DNA of 64,000 nucleotides from Bugula neritina (Eukaryota > Animalia > Bryozoa): assembly GCA_964035545.1 (NCBI GenBank), contig OZ037766.1, positions 4,268,722-4,332,721 on the forward strand. The letters run 5' to 3'. A model generated the notes under the pieces. That model had not been told where the DNA came from, did not search any database, and saw only the letters and a program-made list of their open reading frames with translations. Positions 39,302-42,300 of the stretch are shown here, one piece after another (position 1 is the stretch's first letter; the number at the start of each line of letters is the position of its first letter). Both the position numbers and the translations under genes were made by a program.

Positions 39302-42300
39302 TTAACCATTCAACATGTGATTGAAAATAGTGATTGCCAAAAATATAGGCCGGATGGCACTAGAGTTTTTGGGAGGTTTAAAATACTCATCACTTTCATC
39401 ATGCTGATAGTTTAACCCTGTCAGAAGCAAGTCCTGTGTACTCTTTGGTGCCATACAGAGTTTAGTGTACAACTGGTCTTCATTGGACAGTGGTGTTCCA
39501 TCTCTGGTCTTAGTCAGTATTGCTGATAGGAATGAGATCTCATCACAGGTCACATGTGATAGGTATTCCAGCACCTGAAAAGAGAAGTTGTTATAATTAC
39601 AAAGACAATAAACTAAGTTCTACTTTTTACGACTAACAAGACTTGGATGAAAAGAAAATTGATTGTTGCTTGCGTATGAAGTAATAGAGCTGATTAGCTA
39701 TAAACTGACAATTAGCTCATAAGTCAGAATCTTCAGAATACACTGATGATGCGAGTTGTTAAAAAATGTGGCATCTTCAATTATTCCCTATTTTGTGCAA
39801 TGAGTATACAACTGCAAGCTAACCTCTTCATCTGCCTCAACTAACACTGTAGCCATCATCAGTAGTGCCTCTAAGACTTCTTTTGCCTTTTCTCCTAAGT
39901 TGCCCAAATCTAATTCTGTGAAATACTCCTTCAATATGCAATCCATCTCTGCATAATTCTTTTCCGGTTCTTCTAAAGTCAATGCCATTTGTTCCAAGAC
40001 TTTTGGATTATGGCAAGCTTTAATGAAAGACTGAACTACAGCCTCTGTATCAGTTGGACTGAGTTGAAAGGCTGTTACCATGTTCTGTATAAAATCATCT
40101 TCTGCTTCTATATCTGTGTCAAAACAATGGTAACTATATAGAGTAGGAAGCCTACCAAAGGCCAGAGTAGCTGGTCACTATTAATTTGCAAGTTAATTGT
40201 TCTTTGTCTGAAATATTTGAGCCTGACCAGTTACTAGTAACTAGTTACTAGTAAGTAGTAAATAGTCACTAGTTACTAGTAGCTAGTAACTAGCTACTAA
40301 TTCCTAGTGACTAGTAACTATTTACAAGCCACTAGTCACTACTTACTAGTTGATAGTAACTAGTGACTAGTTACCAGTTACTAGTGACTAGTTACTAGTA
40401 AGCAACTCACCACAGACATTGTTAGCATCTTCTTCTAACAAGTGAACCTCTGTTGGGTCACCAACTGCTGAAAAAGTAGTTATTGCTATGATTTAATATA
40501 GTTCACATCTCTTTGGGGTAAATGAAGTTAACTTCAGAGTCTACATGTATGTAAAATATAACATTATGGTAATATATTAAATCTATGTTATAATATATTG
40601 TATAGTAATGCAAACAAAATAGTTTATACAATATAGTATACAATACATCCAATGTAGTAAATGAAATATGTAACACATTAGTTGGTCATTTTGAAAGTTA
40701 TGTAAACCATAACTTTACTTTGTGAAACAAAAAGGCCCAGATGCATAACCTTTACCTATGTATTACGCTACACTCACCTATGTATTATACTACACTCGCC
40801 TATGTATTATACTATACTCATCTATGTATTATACTACACTCACCTATGTATTATACTACACTCATCTATGTATTATACTACACTCACCTACGTATTATAC
40901 TAGACTCACCTATGTATTATACTATACTCATCTATGTATTATACTACACTCACCTATGCATTATACTAGACTCACTTATGTATTATACTAGACTCACTTA
41001 TGTATTATACTATACTCATCTATGTATTATACTACACTCACCTATGTATTATACTATACTCACCTAAATCTTGACCCTGGCAAGGCCCTGCTGCTGAAAT
41101 CTCGGAAACTTCAATTTTTTTTCTGTGCAGGAATCTTCTCCGTTTATTTGGACCTGCATTTAATAAAGCTGTAGCTGAACATGGAACATTGGCAAACAAA
41201 ATAGGGTAATAGCACACTGCTGTATAAATATAAAAGGGAGTAGTAAACCATCTATACTGAAGCCAGTATGTAAACTATAACTTACCCTGACGTGTGGTCT
41301 GAAATATACCAAATCCACCCTTAGCTTTATTAGATAGAACTATTTCTGTGTCACCTACAGAAACATAATCTTATTACATTTAATGTGCCCATTTTAAATT
41401 CTAGCCACGACTGCGGTGTGCAACACTGGTAGATAAAGTTTTGCAAGAGACATGACCAATCTGCATTTAAGCAAAGAATTCTAAACACAGAGCAGAAGGT
41501 TGAACAGAACTTAATAAAGTGACTTATATATTGTTACTCATTTGTTGAGCATGGTTTGTTTCAACATGACAGACTAGCATGCACACATAGTCTACACAGA
41601 CCCGAAAAAAATTAAACTGCTCATTTTTGAAGTTGTTTAAGTAAAAAAATGACAATATGGCTATAATAATGAAGCTTAAATAAAGAAGTGTGTCTCTCAT
41701 TTACTATACCCCATTTTCCACTTTATATATTTAAGTAATCAAGAAAACTAACCAGTGTTAAGGTCTATCTGCAACTCGACTACTTCGTAGGCCAACACCG
41801 CTCCTTCTGGAATAATCGCTGATTTGTTTGTAGTTTTGCTGCCACGTCCTCCAACATCTACTCCGTCACCTAAAACTGTCACCTGGCCAGTGGCCACACA
41901 CCATTACAGCACACAATAACTTTGGATTCAAATCAGAAAATTTATATTTTCGTAATTTTGCATAATCTACAATCATGAGGTAAATTACTATGATTTTTAA
42001 ACTTATGCCTGTTCTGCTTTATCAAATTATGTCTAAATTCTGTTATTATTCATAGGCAGTCCATTTTAACCAATTTTAGTTTATGTCAATGTAATTATGT
42101 TAAGTAACTACACTATTGTCAAGTTAGGCTGCCAAGGAAACTAAATTCAGCTTGTCACGTACGCTATAGTCAAGTTGATGTGCCAAGAATATTGTAGTCA
42201 AGTCAGTGCAGCTGGACTCAGTGTGATGACTCATTATAGAACATACTTTTGTGTTGATTTTTCCATCCACACTATTTTGAGAGCTCAGTGAAACAGTGGC

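Follow-up and report, generated by a model that had tools for sequence, protein, structure and literature searches.

A candidate acidic linker mini-exon with an LEED/A motif in one of two adjacent gasdermin genes of the bryozoan Bugula neritina

Gasdermin cleavage sites of the caspase-1 type have a hydrophobic residue at P4, as in FASD, YVAD, FLTD, and LLSD (PMC10948149), and zebrafish GSDMEb is processed at FEID, as cited in PMC10155998. Amphioxus BbGSDME has several caspase sites (VHTD253 and DVVD304) and splice isoforms (PMC10155998, PMC10361584, PMC11508797). PMC11508797 describes DxxD sites as common to published invertebrate GSDMEs, and its survey lists GSDME as absent from Ectoprocta. 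In human GSDMB, short in-frame exons (exons 6 and 7) lie near the boundary between the N-domain and the linker, and their inclusion alters the cleavage outcome (PMC10154425); pore activity depends on exon 6, and the activating protease, granzyme A, cuts after Lys. In this study, a stretch of 64,000 nucleotides (nt) of Bugula neritina DNA (GenBank assembly GCA_964035545.1, contig OZ037766.1, positions 4,268,722 to 4,332,721; hereafter the window, numbered from its first letter) was analyzed. The window lies on contig 2 of the 216-Mb genome and contains two gasdermin genes, A and B. Gasdermin B contains a 57-nt candidate exon, L3, which carries the motif LEED/A and is absent from gasdermin A. 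The reading preferred here, with a rough probability of 0.5, is that L3 is spliced in, that its (L/F)EED motif is cut by a caspase, that A lost the exon, and that the two copies would respond differently.

L3 is a candidate acidic linker exon at 40467-40411 on the minus strand, in a 947-nt intron between C1 and L2, the last linker exon before it. Its borders are ctactttttcag/CAG...GTG/gtgagt, and it reads A-VGDPTEVHLLEEDANNVC in phase 1 without a stop codon. The donor is a perfect GTGAGT and the acceptor is T5CAG, the strongest splice signals in the gasdermin B gene. Three phase 1-1 mini-exons follow one another in the linker, and L3 is the last of them. E4, L1, L2, and L3 each end in phase 1, which is also the phase at which C1 begins, so L3 is frame-neutral: gasdermin B has 494 amino acids with L3 and 475 without it. 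The guanine-cytosine (GC) content of L3 was 0.44, compared with 0.28–0.35 in the flanking intron and 0.35–0.49 in the other exons. These results confirmed the observation in a first-pass annotation of the window, which had described a symmetric phase-1 segment of 57 nt with LEED/A at 40411-40467 and held that, because it preserves the frame, it could also be skipped. The exon-by-exon gene model also confirmed its placement of the segment in the interdomain linker. The L3 acceptor is a tandem cag/cag (NAGNAG) at 40465-40470, which is conserved in the related species described below; splicing at the second AG would shorten the exon to 54 nt, with one Ala fewer.

Gene models were built from open reading frames (ORFs), alignments of A, B, and the orthologue, and splice signals, with a check of the reading frame in each exon. 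Gasdermin B has nine exons (43674-39302, minus strand), all with GT-AG borders. The pore-forming domain is encoded by E1 (43674-43468, 207 nt), E2 (42998-42796, 203 nt), E3 (42391-42247, 145 nt), and E4 (41882-41753, 130 nt) and ends in L1 (41354-41286, 69 nt), which has 97% identity with the related species. The basic linker exon L2 (41174-41064, 111 nt) may alternatively use acceptors at 41168 or 41153, both in frame. C1 (40113-39824, 290 nt) and C2 (39574-39302, 273 nt including the stop codon) follow L3. Gasdermin A (17551-23114, plus strand; 483 amino acids) has the same exon set minus L3, namely E1 (17551-17775), E2 (18613-18818), E3 (19255-19399), E4 (19846-19975), L1 (20366-20434), L2 (20546-20659), C1 (22220-22509), and C2 (22842-23114). 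Profile, sequence, and fold searches were done on single exons. The gasdermin profile PF04598 matched E1 of B at profile positions 1-69 with 35.2 bits, above the cut-off of 25, E3 with 22.4 bits (138-184), and E4 with 21.3 bits (187-222), which bore out the assignment of the host gene to the gasdermins. The genome-wide PF04598 scan returned the same loci for A and B. Its N-terminal domain places gasdermin B in the family; it would work as two-domain gasdermins do, with a putative C-terminal repressor domain.

Two side observations concern the introns and ends of these genes. A 22-bp minisatellite extends from the L2 donor at 40754-41066 in B and 20659-20837 in A, with GGTGAGT in every unit; in B it amounts to about 14 donor-like sites, and the array is shorter in the related species. 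In A, B, and the related species, the 30–40 nt that follow the C1 donor (39791-39823, GTTAGC…TAG) match the exon in conservation and remain open up to a stop 11 codons on; they could represent read-through, an alternative 3' end, or a splicing element.

The C1 exon as query returned contigs of a related species, one from JGI (L018, 6.5 kb) and three from SRA runs (L019–L021). These contigs were collinear with B over the whole gene, with 83% identity by BLAST and 89% at ungapped sites. The related species has an L3 of 51 nt with identical acceptor and donor and an open frame, which encodes A-VDDQTEICVFEEDNVC. It differs from L3 of B by seven substitutions and one 6-nt in-frame deletion, the only exon indel in 1,479 aligned nt; introns had 46 indels in 2,612 aligned nt, of which 13 were multiples of 3. 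The 50-nt branch/polypyrimidine region upstream of L3 (40468-40517) was nearly invariant, as were the splice sites, with 97% identity in the 60-nt segment 40449-40508. Within L3, the residues D, TE, EED, and NVC were kept while six other positions changed. The in-frame indel, the 8–9 retained splice-site bases, and the open 51-nt frame favor an exon over neutral DNA by an estimated 5–15 fold. With GT-AG borders, a compatible frame, and an open orthologue whose indel is in frame, L3 has the features of a protein-coding exon, and it is very probably a real exon of gasdermin B. The ratio of non-synonymous to synonymous rates (dN/dS) between B and its orthologue was 0.26 for the N domain and higher for L2 (0.51) and the C-terminal exons (0.61). 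The value for the N domain indicates purifying selection, so B is a working gene. Between A and B, dN/dS was about 1.0 over the pore-forming domain (17551-19975 versus 43674-41753), and the branch of A is about three times longer; A is thus under either positive or relaxed selection.

Several results weigh against the preferred reading, and the first of them concern the exon itself. The search of RNA runs for the locus returned one run, which consisted of DNA contigs spanning introns; it confirmed the sequence of B and showed no variant within L3. No transcript-derived protein of the gene was found in collections of 15 billion proteins, where C1 was searched against 1.84 billion representatives and 5.8 billion clusters and E1 of A was also used as a query; both exons returned only ORF fragments from one related species. 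Identity between B and that close species was 0.90 in exons and 0.89 in introns, so base conservation alone is weak evidence. All seven substitutions in L3 were non-synonymous and none was synonymous, with no sign of constraint on the peptide. These results would fit a pseudo-exon that is never spliced, persists because of the short divergence, and was deleted from A as mere intron. Chance similarity to an exon was estimated with a filter for a YAG after at least 6 of 10 pyrimidines, a GTRAGT donor, a length of 30–200 nt in multiples of 3, and an open phase 1. Of 3,000 dinucleotide shuffles of the donor-rich 947-nt intron, 9.6% contained at least one passing candidate, which counts for a pseudo-exon. 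Shuffles of the whole window yielded 3.9 passing loci in 128 kb (about 0.03 per kb), and chance would thus produce a segment like L3 in roughly 3–10% of trials. Most loci passing in the real window were known exons, which counts against a pseudo-exon. A pseudo-exon also agrees poorly with an in-frame L3 indel when 72% of the intron indels are out of frame, with the nearly invariant splice sites and upstream 50 nt, with the exon-like GC content, and with the position of L3 in the phase 1-1 run, exactly where a linker module fits. We consider this explanation unlikely.

The first-pass annotation had stated that the flanks of L3 join near 21075-21090 in A with no phase-compatible replacement, and both statements held. 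A 120-bp block of B (40398-40517), shared with the related species, which comprises 50 nt on the acceptor side, the exon, and 13 nt on the donor side, is absent from A, where its flanks meet at 21089/21090 (21086-21090, plus strand) with TTAC/T microhomology, abutting a satellite. In B the block is flanked by TTAC direct repeats. An (AGTTACT)n satellite at 40229-40399 starts 13 nt past the L3 donor of B, and its counterpart in A is an array with a 35-bp period at 21088-21244. No remnant of L3 was found in the intron of A, where local-alignment scores stayed at the level of shuffled queries, and no phase-compatible replacement exon with strong sites was found there. Insertion of a transposable element in B was ruled out, as the block is single-copy in the genome. 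A clean microhomology deletion of single-copy DNA favors loss of the block in A, and A may well have lost an ancestral exon. The L2-C1 intron of A also contains about 850 bp at 21245-22097 that are found only in A. Within it, 21334-21462 has 80% identity to sequence upstream of the gene in the related species (contig L018:183-318); the A-only sequence is probably a dispersed repeat.

The direction of the change depends on the orthology of the related gene. Non-exonic sites that group B with the related species against A numbered 427, compared with 179 grouping A with B and 144 grouping A with the related species. A therefore lies outside B and the related species, the duplication predates the species split, and the related contigs are orthologues of B. 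Duplication after the split was rejected, because intron divergence between A and B exceeds that between B and the related species. The outgroup comparison proposed in the first-pass annotation thus recovered the exon in the related species (51 nt, with FEED/N) and left loss and gain unseparated, since an orthologue of B cannot polarize the change. An orthologue of A was not found by single-exon searches of the related species' data, in which one gene of the A/B type was found. A protein-pattern scan of metagenomes was blank, the 20 matches to a 20-nt acceptor pattern were unrelated and looked bacterial, and no third species was obtained. An ancestral intron might have been exonized in the B lineage before the species split, with A later deleting an intronic block. 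The lack of polarity from the related species leaves room for this gain, and the two more distant paralogues described below, C and D, seemingly have one linker exon. Gain, however, takes two events, exonization and deletion, where a single deletion suffices; C and D (about 30% identity) are too diverged to serve as a nucleotide-level outgroup; and the single A/B-type gene found in the related species' data resolves the history only in part. Gain is not a likely account.

The linker of B consists in order of L1, the basic L2 ending in QGQDL, L3 with LEED/A, and D-IEAEDDF at the start of C1. The linker of the related species has FEED/N in L3 followed by D-EKTEDDF. The linker of A, read from L1 to C1, is free of Asp over its earlier part. 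L3 would contribute 19 acidic residues to the linker, opposite the basic L2. LEED/A has a hydrophobic P4, Glu at P3, Asp at P1, and a small P1'; FEED/N has these in part, with Asn at P1'. In a low-confidence model, with a predicted local distance difference test score (pLDDT) of 67, the first C-terminal helix follows the (L/F)EED motif by about 12 residues. The DxxD tetrapeptide, the caspase-3 site of the GSDME type, is absent from the linkers of A, B, and the related species. The annotation had named LEED/A a caspase-like site; the motif is present and has its counterpart FEED/N in the related species, and the protease part of the claim stands as a prediction from the motif.

The further points against the preferred reading concern the cut site and the C-terminal domain. 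Glu at P2 is not preferred by caspases, and with P1' Asn in the related species the motif is suboptimal. An Asp at the start of C1 (ED/D/F) is common to A, B, and the related species, and B has another at the end of L2 (QGQD/L); either of these could be the actual cut site. The EED codons read GAAGAAG in L3. Exonic splicing enhancers typically contain purine-rich words such as GAAGAAG, and the conservation of this one could reflect a splicing enhancer rather than a protease site. Individual Pfam scans of C1 and C2 gave no match, and PDB-sequence profile searches with the C-terminal exons were blank, so that the repressor domain stays putative. The AlphaFold model of C1 alone was all-helical with low confidence (the pLDDT given above) and a predicted first helix H2-14, and Foldseek with this half-domain, low-confidence query gave no gasdermin match. 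L3 might thus be real and serve as a spacer or regulatory insert, with the activating cut at another Asp and no L3-based difference in specificity. The C1-start Asp (xEDD-F) kept in all three genes, the neutral rate of L3 at the protein level, the enhancer word, and the suboptimal P2 and P1' residues agree with such a role. The C1 Asp, however, lies inside the predicted first helix and would be poorly accessible, (L/F)EED lies upstream of that helix in the region where gasdermins are usually cut, and D, TE, EED, and NVC were retained while other positions of L3 changed. A spacer is a serious but somewhat unlikely explanation. It is less likely than not that a caspase activates B at (L/F)EED and that this sets A and B apart.

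In the preferred reading, L3 would be the third linker mini-exon joining the pore-forming N-terminal domain to the C-terminal domain, and it would place an Asp, preceded by Glu at P3 and a bulky hydrophobic residue at P4, roughly where gasdermins usually get cut. A cut at (L/F)EED would free the pore-forming fragment of B. A would have lost L3 through a 120-bp microhomology-mediated deletion beside the satellite, and its linker would now be without such a site. We infer the splicing of L3 and the use of its Asp as a protease site, presumably for a caspase, and hence the different responses of A and B.

The genome contains at least seven gasdermin loci by the PF04598 scan, at least five of them beyond A and B. 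Paralogue C (contig 2, 2045000-2054999, about 2.05 Mb) has DVVD/A, and paralogue D (contig 8, 12126000-12135999, about 12.13 Mb) has DSLD/E. Both tetrapeptides lie just past the GGF strand in the L1-equivalent exon, whereas A and B end this exon ahead of any Asp. C and D each seem to have just one linker exon and, at about 30% identity, are not alignable as DNA. Since C and D keep DxxD and A and B do not, the A/B lineage appears to have lost the canonical position, moved the candidate site, and extended the linker with mini-exons. A tandem cluster of three gasdermins lies on contig 8 (11674079-11688489); E1- and E4-type exons were recognized there, and linker and C-terminal exons were looked for and none identified. 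Caspase-domain (PF00656) matches numbered at least 177 at the exon level, with 150 of the 300 candidates scored, and form tandem clusters, for example on contig 1 (32.8–35.5 Mb), contig 6 (2.5–6.3 Mb), and contig 7 (5.0–7.7 Mb). This large caspase repertoire indicates that the genome has many candidate proteases. A wider proposal is that a bryozoan family of at least seven loci diversified its protease-sensing linkers by gain and loss of symmetric phase-1 mini-exons, with L3 as an alternatively spliced switch for sensitivity to a hydrophobic-P4, inflammatory-type caspase from the expanded repertoire, A uncoupled from it for good, and C and D keeping the ancestral DxxD site for executioner caspases. 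This proposal would be speculative, and we regard it as improbable in its entirety.

A and B lie in a large inverted duplication (palindrome), in which 14289-30273 (plus strand) corresponds to 46545-32426 (minus strand), with the center near 31.5 kb. Each arm contains one gasdermin and one MFS transporter. Arm-to-arm identity was 70–95%, with a minimum of about 70% over the 5' half of the gasdermins and a maximum of 95% at 24.65–25.14 kb, in the interval separating the gasdermins from the MFS genes. The MFS genes themselves were 87–89% identical, and the part closest to the center 81%. The uneven identity suggests gene conversion in the palindrome. In C2, 18 sites grouped A with B and 4 grouped B with the related species, indicating homogenization of the 3' exons of A and B, which fits gene conversion spreading from the palindrome center.

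Like GSDME of coral, Hydra, and amphioxus, gasdermins A and B have about 490 amino acids and a PF04598 domain followed by a linker and a C-terminal part that is predicted to be helical; activation by caspase cleavage in the linker is expected. The DVVD of paralogue C is one of the two mapped sites of amphioxus GSDME. Unlike invertebrate GSDMEs, A and B have linkers without DxxD, and the candidate site of B has a hydrophobic P4 and lies on its own mini-exon. Amphioxus isoforms truncate domains, whereas B would toggle a linker cassette. As in human GSDMB, the module is a short in-frame exon; unlike the GSDMB exons, L3 encodes an acidic segment closer to the C-terminal domain, and its alternative use is a prediction from the exon phases. 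The pair can also be compared with bird, reptile, and amphibian GSDMA versus mammalian GSDMD, where paralogues differ mainly in the linker tetrapeptide (PMC10948149). The (L/F)EED motif has its P4 in common with FASD, YVAD, FLTD, LLSD, and FEID, its P3 with FEID, and Asp at P1; in gasdermins, a bulky P4 together with Asp at P1 marks targets of inflammatory caspases. Biochemical work showed the vertebrate GSDMA/GSDMD difference, which arose by point substitutions within a single linker exon, whereas that between A and B is the presence or absence of a whole mini-exon, through a 120-bp deletion, and is read from sequence.

The choice of linker protease sets the danger signal for lytic cell death, so a linker change after duplication is decisive. 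These genes place gasdermins in a phylum from which GSDME was reported absent (PMC11508797), along with sister paralogues that have the classical DxxD. Two adjacent paralogues that differ by a removable 19-residue module, bearing the only Asp motif with a hydrophobic P4, form a natural experiment. If L3 is not included or not cut, this would be an ordinary fast-evolving linker, and the finding would come down to newly annotated bryozoan gasdermins. Inclusion and cleavage of L3 would mean that linker specificity in gasdermins can evolve through gain or loss of exons, and perhaps be switched by splicing, and not through point mutation alone.

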